Shown here: positions 32,139 through 43,870 of the stretch, piece after piece
How the letters are laid out: every line of letters starts with the position of its first letter
How positions within the stretch are numbered: the stretch's first letter is position 1
DNA from: Marsupella aquatica
Taxonomy: Eukaryota; Plantae; Marchantiophyta
Reading direction: 5' to 3'
Assembly (NCBI GenBank): GCA_973895155.1
Contig: OZ316899.1
Coordinates: 393,473-457,472, forward strand
Length of the DNA: 64,000 bases
Notes under the pieces: generated by a model
Database searches by the model: none
What the model saw: the letters and a program-made list of their open reading frames with translations, nothing else
Told to the model about the DNA's origin: nothing
Position numbers and translations under genes: made by a program

Positions 32139-33949
32139 AAGTCAGGTGAGTCTTTCTTTTTGAAATCTGCATTTCTTTTGGAGTCAAAGGTCAAAGTATT
32201 GCAGGAACATCTCGAGGCCAGGGTACAATGACAGGGTACGAGTCACACTTGGATTGACTCGTTGAATAGGTACAACACACTTGGGGGATATTGTCGAGGC
32301 AGTTTGTTTGGTACCAGGGGAACAAAAGTCCACACAAGGAAATGTATGCAGCAGGTTTAAGCAACATAGACTTCTGCCTTTGTCACTCACATTGGAGCTG
32401 AAGTTTTACTTTTCATTTTGCTGCCTCATCTGAAGCAATTGACATACCCTAAAATTTTGCAGGCTGAAATGAGGAGATCAGTTGGTGGAATGAGTGAATT
32501 GCTGGTTGCAAGCAATTGTATTTCACCTGGCCCATCCACTCACGCCAACATGGAGAAACCACAGTCGTTCAAGGAGGTCCATGCAAAACCCAGGGCTTTG
32601 CCAATCAAGGTACCAAGGAAGGGAAATATTTCCAGGAAATCACTGTTGGAGATGAAGGTCATGGAGTTCCTGCCTGAAAATTTCTGAAGAGACACGCCTA
32701 ATGGCAAGCATGGAGGATTCCAAAGAGGATGATGTTGTGACAGATGCAGAGAGCACCAACAATGCATCCTGGAGTGACGATTGCTATGTGGTGATTACTC
32801 AACACCCCCCTAGCCCAATTCGCAGACCGCCGAGAGCTCAATCTTAGGTTTTTGTGGTGGAGCTTGGATTCTATACCATGGGCATGTATGTATTATGTTA
32901 GTTTTTTGCCCACAGACTTATGTTTTGTTATGGCAAAGTTCAACACAAGTAGGGTTGAAACTAGGAATGCCCATGAGGAATATGAAGGCCTTGCATTGCA
33001 TTTAATTTCGTAATGACATTGTTTAAATGTGATGAAACGGCCTCTGTCATTTGCAATTCAGTATGCAATGTCCAATGTTCACTGAGTGCAAGGAAGCAAT
33101 TTTATTCATAAGAAACACATGAATACAGTTGAAGCCATTCAAGGTTGCAAAGAAATCCATGACTACAATTGGCTAGCCAATAAACTTTGGAATGAAAATC
33201 CAGCTTGATCAGGCTGAATTTTGCACTCAAAGTCTGCATTGTCCACAAACACTAAACCCTAATACATGTGGGCTTCTGGTCGGGCCAACCATTCTCTTGA
33301 GAAATATGGGAATTGGTTTCTGAATAGCAAAAGGAGCAGGTCCACTACTTTGCATCTGTGCTTTTAGCTTCATTCACTACAACACTACCGACCCCTTTTG
33401 CGAACCCCGTCCCATCGCAACTAACAAAGGACCAAATTATGAAATTCTGGCGTTTGCGAAACGCTACGCATCGCAACCCTTTCGCATTCTTTGAAACCCA
33501 CAGCTTCGCAATCGGACTTTCGCAACCCCTTTGCAACACCTTCGCACACTGCAAAACTTATTTTATCGCACATAAATCACATTTATGCGATCTCGACAGA
33601 CTCTTTATCGGTTTGCAACGCGCTCTGAACTATAACTTATTTGCGAAGTTGTTGTCTTGACAATTCTGTTGCCATTCATATGGTATCACATAACTGCGTC
33701 AGTCAGGGTGTCGCACAATTGCGGAACCAAAAGTATCGCAATGTTCCAATACTCAATGTATGGCAAGTTTGCGATAGTATGGCGTTTGCATGTGTTTCGC
33801 AAGGATAGTTTGAGGGCTGGGTTTTGTATATTTGGGTTCATAATTGGGTTGGGGTCTTATTGCTCCACATGAAGATACCAAAGCAAAACTTTATATATGC
33901 CAAAAATCCCTGAATGTACAAAAATTAGGGTTTTCTAAAACCCTATGGG

Positions 33950-36038
33950 GTATCAAATACCAAGACACTGTCCTTTGACTAATCCATATGCCATATGGAG
34001 TGAACTACATCTGCATCCTCTAGAATGGAGCCCGCCTACTCCTCTTTGCTGGCCTCTTCCCCTTGTCCTTCTTGCTTTGGGCGGGACGAGCTGGACGAGA
34101 GGGGGGTGGTGGTGGTGGTGGCGGTGGTGGTGGTGCCTGCTGCTCCTCCCCATCTGGCTCATCCTCATCATCGTCATCATCCTCATCATCATCCTCCTGG
34201 TCTCCTGGTGTGCTAGGTGTGGCAGCACTCCCTGCCCCTCTGGACCCACTCGTGGTGGCCCCGGTAGTGTCCCCATCATCAGCGCCGCTATCCTCCTCAC
34301 TGCTATCCTCACTCCCCTCCTGCTCCTCCTTATCCTGCTTCCATGTCACAAGATTAATTCGGGTTTAGGGTTAATAGGAAAAATGTATAAACCTTATAAA
34401 TGGAATGGGTGCGGGTTTAGAAAGGGTACTACAAATCACTCACACTAGCCAACTCTGCATCAACCAACTCAAAGAGATGTCTGGCCCCATGCTCTGCCCC
34501 TATCTCCATCTCCTTTGTTGTTATCTTGCGGCGGTACCTCTTATACTACCACAAAAAAATGAAACACCAAAACATAAGGGGCCCGGGTTAGTAACTAAGG
34601 GTACTTAAGCAAAAAAGGAATCCTAAAAAGGGTAAAAAGGGTACCCTAACCAGAAAAAAACCCCATTACCCTAACAAACATTTGTCACTCGACACTAAAC
34701 GTTTTTCAAAATGAAACAAGCTTTGCGAAATAGACTGCGAATCGGATTGCTTCGCAATGGCTTCGCAAACCTTACGGGAAAAAGGTTATAATAGAGTTTG
34801 CGAAACAATTGCGAGGCAACCCGCTTCGCAATTGTTTCGCAAACTGTGCTTTTAAAAAAATCCAAGAAATGGCTAAGGCACGCAATGTGTCAGGGTGACC
34901 TAAAACGAAAGGGGAGGCCATAAGGGGTAAAGCAGAGGTCTGCGAGGGGCATTGCAGGCAAGCAAACAACAATTGAAGGCGAAGGAAAAGAAGCAGGGGA
35001 GGAGGGGAGAGGACTCACGAAGGTTGCTTTCAGGCCGGGAAGTCCACCTTGCCCCATCTTGTGTGTGGTCTTGGGGCGTTTGCTGACTCGGTCTGCTGCA
35101 AGGATGAACTTCTGGGGTGGTGTCCCCACTTCATCCACGATGTGCTGCAGCTGAGAGACCTTCTCAGCCAATGCCTTGAGGTCTTTGTCTGACTTCCCGG
35201 CCTGAAGTGCCTTGGCCTCCTTCTCCTTCCAGAATTGGAGGTCCTTGGCTGCTTTTAGCTGCACCTCGACCTTATAGAACGCGTTCCACACATCCTCTGT
35301 AAATTGCACTGGCCTCCTCACGTTCCTGTACTCCTGCAAGCTTGCCAGGTAGGCCCTCACCTTCCTCCTATCATGGTATCGTGCTTGAGACATTGAATTC
35401 GAAATTCTATCTGCAAGCCACTGGTCATCAATCTCTGCTCCATTTGTGAATGAATCTTTGACCTGAGTCATTACTTTCCTCTACTCTGCTCTGCTTAGTT
35501 TCCCCCACTCAACACCTCGTGCAAAGCTAGTCCTCACAGCAAGCCTGATAGTGCTCTTTGCCCCAGTGTAGGCCAACTCAGTAGGAATGCCCTCAACCAA
35601 GGCAATCAATGGCAACTTCTTCCTCTCTTCCTCCTTTTTCCGCTGCGCCTCACGTTGTGCTCGAATCTCATCTCGTTCCTCCCTTCTCCTCTTCTTTTCG
35701 AGGGCTACAGGAGAGAGTACTCCTGCCTTAGCCCTCTCCTCCTTCTTTCGTTTCTTCTCTCTGGCCTTCTCCTCAGCTGCAGCCTTTGCCTCTTTCTCCC
35801 TCTGAGCCTGCCCTGCTGCAACCCCGGTTTGCAAAGCTTGCCCTAGAATTGCACTCAAAGAAGCAATCCCAGTTGGTGTACTCAAATCCAAATGGCTCAG
35901 CTGTGTGGCATTGAGATGCTCGGCCATCAAATTCGTCCATTGATTACTCTCCTCATTCCTGTTCCCTCCATTGCCATTGCCACTCCCACTCCCACTTGCC
36001 CCTGCCCCATCCCCTCCACGCCCTCCACTAGAATCCAT
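33950..36038 (-). pseudogene. CACTA second ORF (TnpA-like or unknown), with in-frame TAG at 35481-35483 and a probable intron at about 35020-34340
   Basis: ORFs 35481-36038 and 34890-35471 are in one frame; acidic and Pro-rich tail at 34020-34349; divergent from the transposase. Confidence 0.55.
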
Positions 36039-37391
36039 AGCTATCCAACACCAAGCGCGCGCAAGCTCTCCTCCTGCCCTCCCTCACTTCAAAAAACGTC
36101 GAATGGGCCTCGTAACCCGGTGGGAAGGTCCGAATGCCCAGACAAAACACATTTGCGACGCAGTTCGCATCGCAATTTGCGAATCAGCCCGCTTCGCAAC
36201 TAGTATCTCAACTTTCCAAAACCAATGCGAAACCACACGCTTCGCAAAGCCTTCGCAAAGCTGCAGAGACGCGAAAAAACGCTCTCGGGTTCTATTTTTC
36301 CGAAGCTGTTGCGAAACATTTTGCTTCGCAAATAATGTGACCAAATTCTGAAGCAGGTCGGTTCTCAATATCGTGGCAATTCCTGGCGAAATTTTTTTCA
36401 CATTCTTTCCCTCCTCCTTTTGTTTAGGCCATGTAAGTTATACTATGCCCTTTTGTGTAATTAAGAAATTCCGCCGTTTCAAATCCCGGCGTTTGTTAGG
36501 GTTGGGTCTTGGATGAAGCTGGTTTTTTTAGGGGTTAAAAGCGAGATTACCAGTCAAACCTTCCGTTTTTTAAGCTATACATGGTGTGGGTGTAGGCTAA
36601 TTTTGATAAGAGTTGGGTTTTGGTTTAAAATTAATAAGTGAGGAAAGGGTTTAGGATTAAAGTTGGGTTTGGGTTTAGGGTTTAAGTCTTTAATTTTGGG
36701 TTTAAGCAGGGTTTGCATTTATGGTTGTAGGCTTTTAGGGTTCAAGCAAGGGTTTAGGGTTTAAAACAAAAGAGAGAAAGGGGATTGGGAGTGAGGGTCT
36801 AGGTTTTTGTAATAGGTCAGAGGTTTGGGGGTGAGGGTTTGGAAAAGGCAAAGCAAGGTTAGATGAGATTAATGTTTTAGTTGTTTTACCATGGGTTTTA
36901 TGGGTTTTAATGGGTTTTATGGATCTTTTGGGTTTTAATGGTTTTTCCATGGGTTTTATGCTAACAAAGGAGGAGGAGCTATGACAACTTGCAGGGTGCG
37001 GCACTTTTGCATGAATTGATACTAGCTAATGCGTATGCATCGTATGAGCCCGGGCATCTGGAGGTACGGACTAAAATAGATGGGTCTAGTTAGGCTTATT
37101 CATGTAATTAAAACTTTTGGTTCCCACTATCTATAAAGAGGACATGTATGTAAGGTGTTCGCTTTGTGTACTTGCAGCTTTTCTCATACTTCCAGATTCG
37201 GTTCATTATTTTAGAGCCACAAGACCTATTGGCACCGCTGAGCCTGGGTCTCAGAAAGGTATTTTTTAGTGTTCCTTTTGTGTTTGGTTTCATGTCATCA
37301 TTACTTGAGAACTTACATTTGTCCAGCTTGATATTGTGATGTTATTTGGTAATAACCCCTAACTTGCAAATTATACATCTTTGTAGGGGCA

Positions 37392-37625
37392 ATGTCTTCA
37401 TCTTCTGAGATCTCCACCACAGATTCTTCCTCCTCCGATGAAGATATACCACCTCCTCCTCAACCTCACATGACTGCACCTCCTCCTCGTGGTCCACCCC
37501 GTCAGCTTTGCCAATGTGCCAAATGCGTGGGTCAGGTTTCCCAAAAGTCCTATATATGCACCCAGCATATTGAGAGATATGGACGTTACGGACGTCATAC
37601 AACAGGGGCTTCCTCATCCCATGTG
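37392..37625 (+). CDS. CACTA first exon, transposase-associated Cys/His zinc domain
   Basis: CQCAKC...ICTQHIERYG; ends in phase 0 at donor GTAAG (37626). Confidence 0.75.
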
Positions 37626-37726
37626 GTAAGTGTTTACGCCTTAGTTTCTACCCTATTTCCACATCGCAATGGTGAAGGTTTTTAATTTGACACCTCTTGT
37701 TGTTTGTTTTGGTTTGGATGGAATAG

Positions 37727-38541
37727 GTATCTAGTAGGCCTAGACCTGCGGCATCAGCACCTTATGTCCCATCACAAGGTGTTCTAGATGCTATAGGCAA
37801 TGCATTCTCACAAGCCTTGGGTCTAGCAACAGCCCCCTCCAGTCCTAGGGCAGTTGGGGGTGAGCCTGTTGTCCCAAGAGGGAGAAAGCGTTCCAAGAGA
37901 CGGCCCCGAGGGGATACTGATTTGTACAAGGCAGTGGTTACCGGTAGGTGGGGTGATTGTGAGTTTACTGGCAGATGTGTTCCTATCATCAAGGACTGGG
38001 ATCCCCAGACTCTTGGTTTGCCACAAGAGCTTTCCTATGGTGAGGAGGTAGAGGTTGGGGAAGACGTTGGGTTATCAAACCTTCCACACTTGGGGATAGA
38101 CATGGCTATGGAGTTTTTGCTTGTGAAGACATCATTGTGGATACCGAGAGTGGTAGTGGTGGACGCAGTCGAGAAGGACCTACGTTGTTTCCTTATGGTG
38201 GACCCATCTACAAGAGAAGACATTGGAACATGATCCTTGCACAACATCCTGAGTGGAAGACTTATGCCTTGGAGTTAGATACTTTTGATGGAAACACTAG
38301 GAGGTATAGTGAGCAGCGGGTGATAGATGGGGACCCCATACGAACTGGGAATATAGCTGGTTTCATAAACAGTAATGTGGGGACTCGCCCCAAGCGTAGG
38401 CAAAATTGTGAGTGGGTTTTCATTGAGGGTCCTCCACCAGCCCCTTATGGCCAGACATATCATCATGACCATTGTCTGGTTGTAGCTACTAGGACCATTC
38501 ACTCAGGTGATGAGTTGTTTACTCACTATGTGTGGGATTAG
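37727..38541 (+). CDS. SET-domain (lysine methyltransferase-like) exon inside the CACTA; one frameshift near 38045-38065
   Basis: Frame open 38044-38541: WVIKPSTLGDRHGYGVFACEDI (motif I), FPYGGPIY, GNIAGFINSN (NHS-equivalent), LVVATRTIHSGDELFTHY (pseudoknot, terminal Tyr). Confidence 0.8.
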
Positions 38542-38684
38542 AAAATGACCATACACATGGCGTTTGGCCACATTTTGTATTTACACCAGTACCGATATTA
38601 TTTCATGTTTGCACACCCCCATATATTCTTCTACATGTTGTAACTATTTGCTTTGTAACTTTCAATTGTTTGCATTGTTTTTAG

Positions 38685-41600
38685 AATGTGCGACCCTCTC
38701 AAAATATGTTACCACGGAGATTGAGAGCAGCATATCGGGAAATGGGTATGCCGGAAGAAGGACAAGGCTCTGAGTCACATTCCTCATCAAGTGACAGTGG
38801 AAGCAACAACCCTGATCGCAATGTACCCAGAACATATGAACAGGTTATTGATGACCAAGATAGAGCCATGGATGATTTTATGGTTGATTGGTTTGGTGTT
38901 GACGTCCCTGGTGATGATGCTGAGGTGTCTGCTGATCAAGGAGGTCATGTGCCCCCCAATGATCCACGACCAAGACATACCCCCGAGGGACAGCGCCAAT
39001 GGGAGGAAGCAGAGGAACATGCCCGAACTCCTATCTATGAGGGTGCTCGTTTGAGTCATCTTTCTGTTATCTTGGGGTTGATGAATCTACAGGCCAAACA
39101 CAAGGCAAGCAATGCCTTGTTATCTGATATGTTTGCACTTTGCCATGACCTTATGTTACCTTCTGGCAATGTGTTGCCAGGAACTTGGAAGGAGGCCAAG
39201 CGTGTTCTCTCATCAATTGGCATGGAATATCATATCATTCATGCATGTGTGAATGATTGCATGTTATTTCATGGGGCCGATGAGAAGAAGACACAGTGTA
39301 CTGAATGTCATGAGCCACGATATGACCCCAACATGATTACAAAGAAGGTGCCAAGAAAAGTTGTTCGTTGGTTTCCCATCATTCCTCGGTTGTTGCACAT
39401 GTACAGGTGTTCTGATTTGGCAGAGTTGATGGTATGGCATAAGACTCATCGATCAGAGCCTGGTGTTATGCGGTTGCCAATTGACTCTCTTGCAGTCAAA
39501 CATATTGAGGAAACATGGCCAGACTTTGCACATGATCCTCGTCATGTGAGGTTGGGATTGGCATCTGATGGGGTTAGTCCTCATGCCCTTGGAGGCAAGG
39601 GAAGACCTACATCAGTTTGGCCTGTGGTTGTGATGAATTACAACCTTCCACCATGGCTATCCATGAAGAAGGGGTTCCTCTTGCTGTCTTTGATTATTCC
39701 AGGTCCAAAAAAGGTGAAGAACTTTGACACTTATTTGGCACTATTGATTGGAGAACTCCAAAAACTGTGGGGTGGAGTGTGGGCATATGATGGCAGGAAA
39801 AATACAGGAGGCATTCCACGTGTATTTAAATTGAGAGGGGTAGTTTGTTGGACAATGCATGACTATCCTGGTAAGATGACTTTTTGACCATATGCCACCC
39901 TTCTTTGATATGCTCTTTAATATACTTGTTTGTCATGTGACAACCCTAACATTTAGTCTGGTTTTATTTTTGGTGTAACCAGGGTTTGGCTTTGTCTCTG
40001 GATTGCAAACTCAGGGGTACAAAGCTTGCTCCATCTGTGGTCCACAATTGCAAGATATGACAATTTGGTCCCCATGGCTTAGGAAGATTGTTTACATTGG
40101 GCATACAAAGTTTCTTCCGATGGGGCATGAGATGAGGTCTGACCCACTTTTATTTTCCTCCTTTGACATGCCCCTTGGTGATATGCGGGAAATTCCGGAA
40201 CCAACAACTTTTGGGCATTGGAAGTCACTAGCTGATAGGGTGGCAGACCCTGATGATCCCCTCACCTTTGATGGTACTGGGTTGACGAGGTGGAGTATAC
40301 TAGCCAGTTTGCCCTATTGGTCAGAGTTGAAGATCCGCCATCTTTTAGACCCCATGCACATAGAGGGAAATGTGGGGAAGGCGTTGATAGCTCATTTTAT
40401 GGGGAGAAGGACACTAACTTCAGGGAGGCATGTGAAGAGTTGGAAATGCATCCAGATGTATGGGTACAAGTTGATCCTGCCACAGGTTTGGAACATCGTC
40501 CTTCTGCTCCTTGGGTGCTTAGTGTTGGCCAAAGACGTGAATTCCGGAATCGTATAGGGGAGATGCGGTTTCCTACAGGCTATGGTGCCAATTTGAGGAA
40601 AGCTTTTGGGATGGAGGACAATCACAAATGGCCACGGTATCTCAAGACACATGACTATCACCGCTTATTGCAGCATATATTGCCAGTGGCAATTATAGGG
40701 TTGGGGACCAAAGAAGTGCAAGATGCCATTTGGTCATTGGGTCGTTTGTTGAGATGGATATGCTCAAAGGAGATATATGTGGAAGAGATTCCTGGAATGG
40801 AGGTATTGGCTGCTGAGGTGGTTTGCAAGTTGGAGAAGGCCCTCCCTCCTTCCTTCTTTGATTGTCAGGTTCATTTACTTGTGCATCTTGTGAGGGAGGT
40901 TGTCATTGCTGGTCCAGTTCATTGTCGATGGATGTACTGGCTTGAGCGTTACATGTCAGTCTTGAAGGCTTATGTACGTAACCGTGCACGAGTGGAGGGA
41001 AGCATAGCTATAGGATACTTGGCTGCAGAGAGCATGTTTTATTGTAGTAACATCTTGGCCACCATTGATCGGACTTTACCACGTACTTGGATGGAGGAGA
41101 GGCAAGAGGAGGAGGACCGTTTAACAGGAGCAACAAAAACACGCATGCTTACATCAACAGAGTGGACACAGTTGAATACATTCATGTTGAGTAATAGCAA
41201 TGTCATGGATGAATGGAGGGAGTTTTATGACAATGCCAAAAGAATGAGTCAAAGGGCAAGGATTTTTCCTAAGTTGCATGAGTTTATGAAGGAAAAGTTG
41301 GTTGAGTTGGATGGCATTTTGGCACAAGGAGGAGATGTCTCACAGTTTCCTACTATGACAAATGACATTCGGACCATTGTTCATGGCCCTTTGAGAGTGG
41401 TAACATCCAAGACGGCCATGTGGACCCAAGGGAGACACTTCAGGTTTCACTAGTTCCTAACCTTGTTTTTCATATTCATGTACTACTACTTAAGATATAG
41501 TAATCATTTTACTTAAGATAAGTGTGTTTTTCTCTTTTGGTATGAAAGGTTCCTCATAACATGATTAGTGTTTTTTGTGTAGTAGTAACAATATATGGGT

Positions 41601-42101
41601 CTTGTTAATTTCAGGATTTCTTCCCTTGATGAGAAGAGGGCTCGTACTTTTGATTGTGGAGTTCAAGGGCAGTTTTGTCAGGACTCCCGGAGTAGCCGAC
41701 ATGACAGGAACATTGTTCGTGATGTTGTGCCACACTATGGGAAGATAGAGGAGATTTTGGTGGTCTCATATGACAACCAATCTAAGTTTGAGGAGTATGT
41801 CTTCAAGTGCAAGTGGTTCAAAGTGAACCTTGTTGGTAATAATCGCACTGTACTCCAAGATGAGAGTGGGTTCACACGGTTGAGGACAAGTGCCACTAGT
41901 TTTCAAGCATCTCATTGGCAAACGTCAGAGCCATTTACTTTCCCATCTCACTTGGAGCAATGTTTCTACGTTCCATACCCCTTAGACCCAGAGTGGTCAC
42001 TTGTCATCACATATGTGCCACGGTCTCGTTCCATTGTTTCAGACAAGCCAGACACTATTTTTGTGTCAGATGTAGAGGACATTGAAGGTGACCAAGTGTG
42101 A
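38685..42101 (+). pseudogene. CACTA transposase (Tnp2/Transposase_21, DUF4218, DUF4216), introns 39871-39982 and 41444-41614, 1-nt frameshift near 40395
   Basis: HACVNDCMLF, LGLASDG, NYNLPPW, LLSLIIPGP, MHDYPG, LDPMHIEGNV, KTHDYH, GPVHCRWMYWLERYM; GT-AG sites keep the frame. Confidence 0.92.
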
Positions 42102-43001
42102 GAGACACTTATGGATATTTAAACCAAAAATCTATATCATGGATTGTTCATGTTGTTTCTTAATTAATATTTCATACACCATTAGTGTGGTAGGTATTTT
42201 CATTTTGGACTCCTACTTTCAAAAGAGGTCATGCATATAAGTGACATGGGTACTCCCTCCCTTATCCCTCCTCCCTCTTTGAACCCAAACTCTCCTTCCT
42301 CTTCCAAAAACTCCATAGCTTTTTCTCCTCCCTCCCTCTTCGCTAAAGTCTCTCCTATTTTTAGTAAACCCTCTTTGGACTCCCTTCTTCCTCCGTCCCT
42401 CATCCACCTTCCAACTCCCTTCCTCCCCCTTTCACCTTTCACCTCCCTCCCTCCTCCTCCCCCATTCAAACTCTAACCTAGATGCACACACAAGTCTAAC
42501 ATAAACGTTTGCAAACTGTTTGCGAAACTAAACAAATCCCAACCAAATCGCAATTCTGCCATTTAAACCGTTTCTCAATTATTCCATACTATACGCTTCA
42601 CTATTTTGCGATATCCAGACCATCCCACCTTTACCATCCACATTGTTTCGCACATTTGCCATACAAACCCATCGCAAATTGTTTGAAGCTAACCTTTTCG
42701 CAAACATCCTCCAATACTAATTGTTTCGCATCATTAATGTTACCGTGGTTTCGGACTTTCGGAGCGGTTGCGGGGCCTTCGTAATGTGTTTTGTAATCTC
42801 TGTAGTTTCGCAAACTATTGTGATACAATAAAGTTCGCAAAATGTTTGCGATGCAAATCGCATGGAAGACCAAAGTTGCGATACCACAAGTATCGCAAAT
42901 TGCGATGCGTATTGAGTCATCAATAGTTTGAAGCATCTGGAACCGCAAACGTGTGTCCGGACTCAAATGAGCTTCGCAAAAGGGCAAAATATGTTGTAGT
43001 G

Positions 43002-43870
43002 ATTGCCTCTTCCAACTTCCATTGTTTGGCAAAGCTCCGGTTCCATGTTGTCAGTAGGCAATGTAAGCAGCTTCATGGGAGAATTATTTTGCAAAGTTAT
43101 CACCCGATCTATGTCTGCAAATGCCATCTCCTTCTAATCATTGGCACTAATCTTCATCGCCTCTTGTTCAACCTTCATCCGCTTGTGATCTTCCTTCGCC
43201 CTCTGTTTCCTTTCAGAGGCTTCTTCGGCCTCATATCACTTTGTTGATCTTTACAAGCTTCATCCTGGTCTCTGTCAACACTCTCATTGTCACCATTGTC
43301 TGTGACAATTGGACTTGGTCAAGAGTATTCATTGTGTGTTGCCTCACTCCTAGGTGCTGCTGATTTCTTTCCCTTCCCTTTGGCCATATCATCTAATGGA
43401 TTCCCCCACCGTGGACAATATTTCAAAATCCAGAAGCAAGAATCAAAACCAAAAGATTTCCCTTTCAGATGGTTGAACAATTCTTCTACCTTCACCACTG
43501 TGTCATCAACATTTGTCTCCAAAATTTGAAGGTCTTCTACCTGTTGAAAGCACCCTAGGAACTTTGAGACATCATGTTTAATGTTAGACCATTTCCCTTC
43601 AAGTGATTTTTGGCCTCTTGACTTAGCTCCCTTAGATTTGTGCTTCTCGTAATGCTCAGTGACCCAGTCCCAAAATTGCTCAGCCCTCTGCCCTACACCT
43701 ACACAAGGATCTTGGGAGACATGTAGCATAGTTGTTTGAGCTCTTTGGGACCATAATTTTTCCCACGACTTGCTGCCATCTTTAGAGCCAGGTACACACA
43801 ATCTCATGGAGTCCTCGTGTGCAATGTCAGTTTTGCACGATATGTCTTGGCCCACAAGAATTGTTCATCA
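43002..43870 (-). pseudogene. Harbinger Myb/SANT-like DNA-binding ORF (last codons lie left of the CACTA, about 33230-33374)
   Basis: LHVSQDPCVGVGQRAEQFWDWV...SLEGKWSNIKHDVSKF...FGFDSCFWILKYCPRW. Confidence 0.85.

Follow-up and report, generated by a model that had tools for sequence, protein, structure and literature searches.

Can a plant transposon carry, besides its transposase, a SET-domain gene that serves the element itself, or is such a gene a captured fragment of the host genome? The question is raised by a 64,000-nucleotide stretch of the liverwort Marsupella aquatica (NCBI GenBank assembly GCA_973895155.1, contig OZ316899.1, positions 393,473 to 457,472 of the forward strand; this whole stretch is called the window, and positions are counted from its first letter), in which a reading frame with SET motifs directly precedes a CACTA transposase. 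An original prediction, made from the letters of the window, interpreted this frame as an integral part of a CACTA transposon. Positions 33375-43001 are indeed a complete CACTA (En/Spm) DNA transposon of the autonomous type, 9,627 bp long, which belongs to a bryophyte lineage and is represented here by a decayed copy. The reading that we consider reasonably probable is that in this lineage the transposase transcription unit harbors an extra exon for a small and very divergent SET protein, which would share exon 1 with the transposase and act as an S-adenosylmethionine (SAM)-dependent lysine methyltransferase that favors the propagation of the element.

A SET-domain frame within CACTA ends

The termini of the element were located by following its subterminal repeats outward. 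It has terminal inverted repeats (TIRs) that start with CACTA, a 3-bp target-site duplication (TSD), subterminal repeats that occur in both orientations at both ends, and a TnpD-type transposase, which is 35-45% identical to angiosperm CACTA TnpD-like proteins with PF13963, PF02992 and PF13960 (Table 1). From left to right, the element consists of a minus-strand gene, a promoter region rich in GGGTTT(A), exon 1, a 101-bp intron, exon 2 with a linker and the SET domain, a 143-bp spacer and the transposase exons.

The frame that opens at 38044 (38044-38541) reads ...WGRRWVIKPSTLGDRHGYGVFACEDI...LFPYGGPIY...IDGDPIRTGNIAGFINSNVG...CEWV...VVATRTIHSGDELFTHYVWD up to its stop codon, and its C-terminal part is read as CEWV ... 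ATRTIHSGDELFTHYVWD followed by the stop at 38539-38541. It matches the Pfam SET profile PF00856 over residues 21-162 (model positions 1-104/105) with an E-value of 7.9e-7 and 29.9 bits, which is above the gathering cut-off of 22.4. The profile check that the original prediction had called for is thus positive, and the match, together with the TIRs, the TSD and the gap of 143 bp before the transposase exon, bears out its claim of a SET domain inside bona fide CACTA ends and just upstream of the transposase. A phmmer search of 1.84 billion representative proteins returned 90 related clusters at E <1e-3, the best of them with an E-value of 1e-73.

An AlphaFold2 model of the SET protein, built with a 28-member family alignment, has a predicted local distance difference test score (pLDDT) of 89 and a predicted template modeling score (pTM) of 0.83. 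When this model was compared to known structures with Foldseek, SETD8/KMT5A, MLL1-4, LegAS4, ATXR5, ATXR7, SET1 and MEDEA were all matched with a probability of 1.0, at E-values of about 3e-7 (SETD8/MLL/ATXR5), template modeling (TM) scores of 0.55-0.61 and an identity of 16-22% over about 155 columns. By profile and model, the exon encodes a full SET fold. The fold neighbors comprise H4K20, H3K4, H3K27 and H3K36 enzymes with no preference, and hidden Markov model (HMM) searches against PDB sequences gave weak matches (E 0.006-0.4) to EZH2, MLL, SETD8 and a Plasmodium SET protein. Assignment to one SET class was rejected, as neither the HMM searches nor the fold search separates the classes.

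The motifs of the SET core can be followed through the 28 aligned members of the family. In the GxG motif, the second Gly is invariant and the first is nearly so. The family motif GN(I/L)AGYINS was aligned to GNAARFINHSC of MLL1 in the profile search of PDB sequences, and the SAM-contacting Asn within it is present in the window copy and in 24 of the 28 members. Similarly, the (D/E)ELxxxY motif, GDELFTHY in the window, was aligned to EELTYDY of MLL1 and EELFFDY of EZH2, and the catalytic Tyr of this ELxF/YDY motif is retained in at least 90% of the members. The chain terminates 3 residues past the Tyr without a post-SET Cys cluster, and a basic loop of 10-20 residues is inserted between INS and PN. 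The alignment to MLL1 and EZH2 confirms what had been noted from the letters, namely that the Asn and the terminal Tyr are kept, that the NHS motif is altered and that post-SET cysteines are absent.

Conserved position and copy number

If the SET exon belongs to the element, it should recur with it. Forty related loci (numbered with the prefix L) were fetched from three annotated genomes, Logan contigs, ENA assemblies and 24 JGI metagenome contigs, the metagenome loci having been found by a search with a 7-sequence alignment of the closer relatives. Wherever a locus extends far enough downstream (about 25 loci), the SET open reading frame (ORF) is followed by a CACTA transposase on the same strand; these are L001 and L002 from Riccia sorocarpa, L005-L012, L014-L017, L019-L021, L023, L024, L026, L027 and L031, L039 from Calypogeia fissa, and L040 from Sphagnum jensenii. 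The downstream gene is of the Transposase_21/DUF4218/DUF4216 type in copies from Calypogeia, Sphagnum, Riccia and the metagenomes. The SET sequences of the related loci are 32-88% identical to that of the window, with 73-80% in four Sphagnum species, 88% in C. fissa and 40-47% in R. sorocarpa.

The same 10-base TIR starts the elements in L027 (position 1937), L039 (3144) and L040 (1788). Of these, L027 is a second complete element, with the same left TIR, a degenerate right TIR and a TSD of ACA/ACA, and it represents an independent insertion because it has this duplication of its own. When the relatives were clustered at 90% identity, clusters of up to 360 members were obtained, and the largest of them is made up of full-length, near-identical gene models from S. 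jensenii. In four sequencing runs, the summed contig depth over the exons was 3-50 times that over the intron and the spacer. Among the metagenome copies close to the window, L016-L020 and L023 are intact, and L021, L022 and L024-L027 contain stops or frameshifts; this mixture of intact and broken copies is the usual picture of a transposon family.

These observations bear on the idea of a domesticated host gene for which the transposon remnants are no more than its surroundings. SET proteins are normally host chromatin regulators, and genome annotations name these genes 'SET domain-containing protein'. However, the gene is situated within TIRs flanked by a perfect TSD in both the window and L027, it exists in hundreds of copies, many of which are degraded, and it is constantly linked to a transposase of matching divergence, which makes domestication a highly improbable explanation.

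Selection on the SET exon

The ratio of nonsynonymous to synonymous substitution rates (dN/dS) was estimated by the Nei-Gojobori method with a codon bootstrap, using SET pairs at dS 0.5-0.8. For the SET domain, dN/dS was 0.16 between the window and L016 (95% confidence interval 0.10-0.25), 0.18 between the window and L018 (0.10-0.28), 0.08 between the window and L039 of C. fissa (0.04-0.16), and 0.22 between L016 and L018 (0.14-0.37). The values for the first transposase exon (0.15-0.20), the transposase core (0.09), DUF4216 (0.13) and exon 1 (0.21) are of a similar order, and the linker gave about 0.3-0.8 (0.31-0.82). The SET domain has thus evolved under purifying selection equal in strength to that on the transposase. 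The check on sister copies that had been proposed agrees with the original prediction, as the exon is in place in about 25 loci and its dN/dS is 0.08-0.22 in the pairs compared. The nucleotide identity between the window and the Sphagnum-type copies is about 80% for SET, 71% for exon 1, 60% for the linker, 54% for intron 1 and 50% for the spacer, and SET is the most conserved stretch of the region because its identity is the highest (80% as compared to 50-71%).

CACTA elements are known to capture host fragments. Such a Pack-CACTA capture would mean that this copy or a young subfamily acquired part of a host SET gene, which drifts neutrally without any service to the element, and the capture of host fragments by CACTA elements being well established, together with the frameshift in the window copy, could be seen as support for it. 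By contrast, the position of the exon is constant across about 25 loci, with 32-88% protein identity and from at least three genera, the confidence limits of its dN/dS are far under 1, and it is better conserved than anything around it. Furthermore, no host parent gene was found among the 90 phmmer clusters, and the elements are of the autonomous type with a full transposase. Capture was rejected on account of the broad distribution, the low dN/dS, the lack of a host parent among these clusters and the full transposase, and we regard it as barely conceivable. The original prediction was to be given up if there was no SET profile match, or if the exon was restricted to a single copy and evolved neutrally; neither is the case, because its position is conserved, its dN/dS is low and two independent insertions exist. 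Taken together, the comparison of copies supports the view that the SET exon is an integral and selected part of the element at a fixed position, and not a Pack-CACTA passenger.

No host SET class was found to be similar by sequence in the phmmer search, in which all 90 clusters were short, and those clusters for which the genomic context was fetched all adjoin a CACTA transposase. Across seven lineages, the pairwise identities of SET and of the transposase core co-vary with a Pearson r of 0.95, the pairs not being independent of each other; this co-variation is consistent with, and not proof of, one old acquisition followed by co-divergence. As a separate observation, the dS of SET is about 0.8 between the window and Sphagnum-type moss copies (L016/L015) and 0.80 between the window and another C. 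fissa subfamily (L039), as compared over window positions 38056-38538 and 38685-39884; the divergence from the moss copies is thus no larger than that from the liverwort subfamily. For the element, dS between the window and Sphagnum copies is 0.8-1.4. The dS pattern hints that the CACTA family may have passed horizontally from one group to the other among peat mosses and bog liverworts.

Damage in the window copy

The original prediction had also pointed to a frameshift upstream of the SET motifs, and this was traced to a 1-bp deletion at 38055-38056 with the help of relatives and run contigs. The deletion lies in a T run in which 10 of 10 aligned relatives have one extra T, and contigs of 3 of the 4 sequencing runs have a T put in behind 38054. 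In the transposase, a 1-bp deletion near 40394 splits the ORF, and a T is put in behind 40394 in three runs. Accordingly, the SET exon and the transposase each have a 1-bp deletion, as the relatives or run contigs carry the extra T. The divergent accessory gene is interrupted by an in-frame stop at 35481-35483, through which the relative L027 reads. The window copy is therefore dead, and none of its proteins (SET, transposase or accessory) is made from it in intact form.

Exon structure and predicted splicing

How might a SET exon be expressed from within a transposase gene? The predicted product of exon 1 begins with MSSSS..., continues with a stretch rich in Ser, Asp and Pro, and then reads LCQCAKCVGQVSQKSYICTQHIERYGRY. 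Its C-x-C-x2-C ... H core is kept in all lineages, including L003, L005 and Riccia, and in these distant lineages too the zinc exon precedes the SET exon. The original prediction had not included this first exon. When exon-1 peptides were aligned by hhalign to the N-termini of CACTA transposases that bear PF13963, a probability of 78% and an E-value of 1.7e-5 were obtained, with the Cys and His columns matched. In transposase relatives that have no SET exon, PF13963 and PF02992 are found within one uninterrupted ORF.

All three exon boundaries are in phase 0 and have conserved splice signals, namely GTAAGT at the end of exon 1, TAATAG before exon 2 and (T/A)TAG before the transposase exon. The opening codons of the transposase exon, N-V/I/A-R-P-S, are conserved as well, whereas the adjacent upstream spacer is unalignable. 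The spacer as a whole is about 50% identical to the relatives, which is the neutral level, and conserved coding sequence begins at the first base past the acceptor (...TAG/AAT). Because all junctions are in phase 0, exon 1 can join either exon 2 or the transposase exon in frame. In addition, exon 1 is linked to exon 2 at exactly the predicted site in gene models from S. jensenii, S. troendelagicum, S. tenellum and C. fissa. From this anatomy we infer that a shared exon 1 may be alternatively spliced, with either the SET exon or the transposase exon as its partner.

A different arrangement would be a fusion by in-frame splicing from the SET exon into the transposase exon, so that the transposase itself would bear a SET domain, as in SETMAR. 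In the window, a GT directly follows the Tyr codon (between 38529 and 38530) in phase with the acceptor at 38684, and three gene models, P0033 and P0022 of Riccia and P0286 of S. jensenii, link SET pieces to the transposase. However, the GT after the Tyr codon is not conserved, as relatives have TATGAGTGG or TATATTTGG instead, and L003 is without an in-phase donor near the SET end, whereas a stop 3-20 residues past the Tyr is conserved in 27 of 28 aligned members. Moreover, the P0286, P0033 and P0022 models lose part of SET, P0033 runs past the stop into the next intron, and the junctions all differ. Given the unconserved donor and the conserved stop, a fusion is unlikely, and we give it little credence.

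Proposed function of the SET protein

The preferred reading of the locus, a second protein made from the transposase transcription unit, can be set out as follows. Exon 1 would encode what is, in ordinary CACTA transposases, the N-terminal zinc motif. Its splicing to the SET exon would yield a zinc-linker-SET protein of 340-350 amino acids that ends 3 residues past the catalytic Tyr, and its splicing to the transposase exon, with SET skipped, would yield a canonical zinc-Transposase_21 protein, so that both products might possess a common N-terminal module, as TnpA and TnpD of En/Spm are made from one pre-mRNA. The SET protein would be a SAM-dependent lysine methyltransferase. The shared N-terminal domain might take it to the ends of its own element or to the transposition complex, where it could methylate nucleosomal histones or transposition proteins and thereby aid propagation. 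The benefit might come from counter-silencing or from post-excision repair, and self-regulation is another possible effect.

Several findings weigh against this reading. With regard to splicing, the PF13963 profile is found in exon 1 by hmmscan in 1 of 8 members and weakly (E 0.069), and the window copy gives no match; the Sphagnum and Calypogeia gene models that join the exons may be ab initio predictions; and the four runs look like genomic DNA over 36900-40900, with contigs continuous across the introns and no GT-AG joints. The transposase exon has a conserved in-frame ATG of its own (MLPRRLR) in the Calypogeia/Sphagnum group, and it might be translated without exon 1. With regard to catalysis, the HMM similarity to SET sequences of solved structure lies at E 0.006-0.015, Ser replaces the His of NHS in all 28 aligned members, and a sub-clade (P0022, P0027, P0038 and P0041) has Gln for the SAM-binding Asn, with IQS or NQS and not INS. 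An equivalent His-to-Leu change is known to inactivate SUV39H1.

The catalytic points raise the alternative that a selected but non-catalytic SET module offers a surface that binds histone tails, a host methyltransferase complex or the transposase, and so acts as an adaptor or decoy. Such a role is possible because of the family-wide His-to-Ser change, the Asn-to-Gln change in the one sub-clade and the basic loop between INS and PN, and it would also be in line with the absence of the post-SET region and with the very low identity of 16-22% to active SET enzymes. On the other hand, GxG, the Tyr of LFPYxG, GN-A--IN, PN and ELxxxY are invariant or nearly so, and the Gln sub-clade keeps the invariant Ser and the other motifs. 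PRDM9 is active with a Cys at the position of the His, and the minimal SET enzymes SETD8 and viral vSET work without a post-SET region. We consider a non-catalytic module a doubtful explanation, albeit one to be taken seriously.

A more elaborate version of the methyltransferase reading, which we put forward only tentatively and rate as possible rather than probable, is that one promoter drives two proteins with the same zinc module, namely the transposase and a self-targeted methyltransferase. The latter would be delivered to the subterminal repeats or the transpososome, where it would write a histone mark that opposes H3K9/H3K27-type silencing or aids post-excision repair. Horizontal movement of the lineage, with peat mosses and leafy liverworts as the two host groups, may also have occurred.

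Comparison with known systems

SET genes have been recorded as accessory genes of other transposons. They occur in HarbingerS and in Phytophthora MuDR elements (Kojima and Jurka 2014, cited in PMC12730594; also bioRxiv 10.1101/2025.02.11.637652), as well as in some Helitrons (PMC12730594; bioRxiv 10.1101/2025.02.11.637652). Their likeness to the window lineage is that of an autonomous DNA transposon with a SET ORF besides the transposase and a presumed role in chromatin manipulation. They differ in superfamily and in their hosts, which are oomycetes and others, whereas the window lineage resides in bryophytes, and the window lineage has its SET exon inside the transposase transcription unit, where it apparently shares the first exon. 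The phmmer search of the 1.84 billion representatives found no relatives of the HarbingerS, MuDR or Helitron type, or of a non-bryophyte type, at E <1e-3. With a SET ORF inside its ends, many copies and purifying selection, the window lineage belongs among transposons with a SET accessory gene.

The nearest case by superfamily is Plavaka (EnSpm/CACTA superfamily) of the red alga Bostrychia moritziana, in which PAG2 combines a DNA methylase (PF01555) with SET (bioRxiv 10.1101/2025.02.11.637652). Both encode a Pfam SET domain, but PAG2 belongs to a set of three separate accessory genes, found in giant Plavaka-lineage elements of 17-19 kb, whereas the window lineage has a canonical land-plant-type En/Spm transposase (PF13963-like, PF02992, PF13960, PF13952) and a SET-only predicted protein of about 345 amino acids, fused to the zinc motif of the transposase itself. 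Maize En/Spm resembles the window lineage in that two proteins, TnpA and TnpD, come from one CACTA transcription unit by alternative splicing (which we infer here) and in its homologous transposase. It differs in that the second product is the DNA-binding protein TnpA there and a SET-domain protein here; in addition, the transposase ORFs of En/Spm lie in the first intron of tnpA, whereas in the window lineage it is the transposase gene that holds the SET exon in its first intron.

SETMAR (Metnase) arose when a host SET gene captured a mariner transposase, and it is a single-copy domesticated fusion (PMC2847698, PMC8704517). It likewise has SET and a DNA transposase at one locus, and it offers a precedent for linking SET activity to transposon-end binding and DNA repair. 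The resemblance ends there, as the window lineage is mobile and multi-copy, with SET and transposase as separate polypeptides and a conserved stop between them. TET/JBP genes are present in fungal KDZ, Plavaka and EnSpm transposons (PMC12730594). Like VANC of the Mutator-like VANDAL elements, their products offer a functional analogy, being encoded by a transposon and acting on its epigenetic state; they have no relation to the SET protein in sequence or fold, and they concern DNA methylation, whereas protein lysines would be the proposed substrate here. Finally, SETD8/KMT5A, ATXR5, MLL/SET1 and LegAS4 have the same fold (about 155 residues, TM 0.55-0.61), the GxG motif, the Asn of NHS and the Tyr of ELxxxY, and are set apart by the 16-22% identity, by the His-to-Ser change and the basic loop before PN found here, and by the lack of a C-flanking segment in the transposon protein.

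A literature search for a bryophyte or Sphagnum CACTA element with SET found nothing specific. The claim that an integral SET gene in a CACTA element was undescribed can be upheld in part: none was found for land-plant-type CACTA elements, but the kind as such is already known from the SET accessory genes described for HarbingerS, MuDR, Helitrons and Plavaka. What appears to be undescribed in the searchable literature is a SET gene in a canonical land-plant-type CACTA element, its distribution in mosses and liverworts, and its location within the first transposase intron, with an apparently shared zinc exon.

Layout of the element and neighboring features

Table 1. Features of the CACTA element, listed from left to right by position in the window
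Feature	Position	Strand	Basis or remark
Left TSD, ATT	33372..33374	.	read directly; same as 43002-43004
Left TIR, CACTACAACA	33375..33384	+	read directly
Left subterminal repeats, TTCGCAA / TTTGCGA motifs	33397..33802	.	motif positions
Divergent accessory gene, K/E-rich, about 380 amino acids	34890..36038	-	two ORFs in one frame, split by the stop at 35481-35483
GGGTTT(A) telomere/telobox-like cluster, divergent promoter region	36640..36960	+	motif count, TRF arrays
Exon 1: ATG and CxCxxC...H zinc motif (transposase-associated-domain-like)	37392..37625	+	donor GTAAGT at 37626
Intron 1, GT...AG, 101 bp	37626..37726	+	acceptor TAATAG/G conserved; 54% identity to relatives
Exon 2, linker and pre-SET segment	37727..38055	+	reading frames and alignment with relatives; frame shifted by 1-bp deletion
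SET domain	38056..38541	+	GYG 38104-38112; Asn109 38368-38370; Tyr162 38527-38529; stop TAG 38539-38541
Spacer between SET stop and transposase exon, 143 bp	38542..38684	+	acceptor AG 38683-38684
Transposase exon, acidic N-terminal part and Transposase_21	38685..39887	+	PF02992, E 1.6e-37
Transposase continuation, end of Transposase_21, then DUF4218	40003..41453	+	PF13960, E 5e-34; two overlapping ORFs
Transposase C-terminal exon, DUF4216	41595..42101	+	PF13952, E 5.5e-8
Right subterminal repeats, TTCGCAA/TTTGCGA	42519..42980	.	motif positions
Right TIR (TGTTGTAGTG)	42992..43001	-	reverse complement of left TIR CACTACAACA
Right TSD, ATT	43002..43004	.	matches left ATT

The divergent accessory gene to the left of the transposase unit is also a shared component of the family, with an identity of 55-63% in L017, L023, L027, L039 and L040 (54-63% for the Calypogeia and Sphagnum copies), and 28% in L005. 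Its protein gave no Pfam match and no meaningful Atlas neighbor, and it is coiled-coil-like. The gene may be the TnpA-equivalent of the element. Extra internal clusters of subterminal-type repeats are located at 34722-34845 and 36152-36332; both flank the accessory gene, and the former includes a 23-bp palindrome. A GC-rich stretch in the left arm (33945-34448) reads on the minus strand as an acidic, Pro-rich low-complexity peptide and may be a further exon of the minus-strand gene.

Between the accessory gene and exon 1 lies a strand-biased cluster in which 15 of the 43 GGGTTT motifs of the window are found within 620 bp. The same spacer is enriched in GGGTTT in L017, L023, L027, L039 and L040. 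Teloboxes are known promoter elements of plants.

At 39882, near the end of the first transposase ORF, contigs of three runs diverge from the window and continue with CCATGCCATTTGCAACCC..., which represents either a variant subfamily without the following intron or a different junction. Just beyond the right TIR, an ORF on the minus strand (43319-43855) has a weak match to PF14303, the NAM-associated C-terminal domain (E 9e-5), and it probably belongs to another transposon, into or beside which the CACTA element inserted.

Significance

Transposons with chromatin- or DNA-modification enzymes of their own, such as VANC, TET/JBP, retrotransposon DNMTs and the SET genes of HarbingerS and Plavaka, give a rare view of the silencing arms race. 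The family found in the window adds to such cases a canonical land-plant CACTA element that is abundant in Sphagnum and liverworts. Intact natural copies are numerous, as exemplified by a 343-amino-acid protein of S. jensenii with 360 near-identical gene models; an intact protein of C. fissa has 351 amino acids. Because intact copies exist, as do bryophyte chromatin maps and transformation systems, what a transposon would gain from a histone-writer-like protein is directly testable. The finding also matters for annotation, since hundreds of bryophyte gene models named 'SET domain-containing protein' are transposon genes, and not host chromatin regulators.

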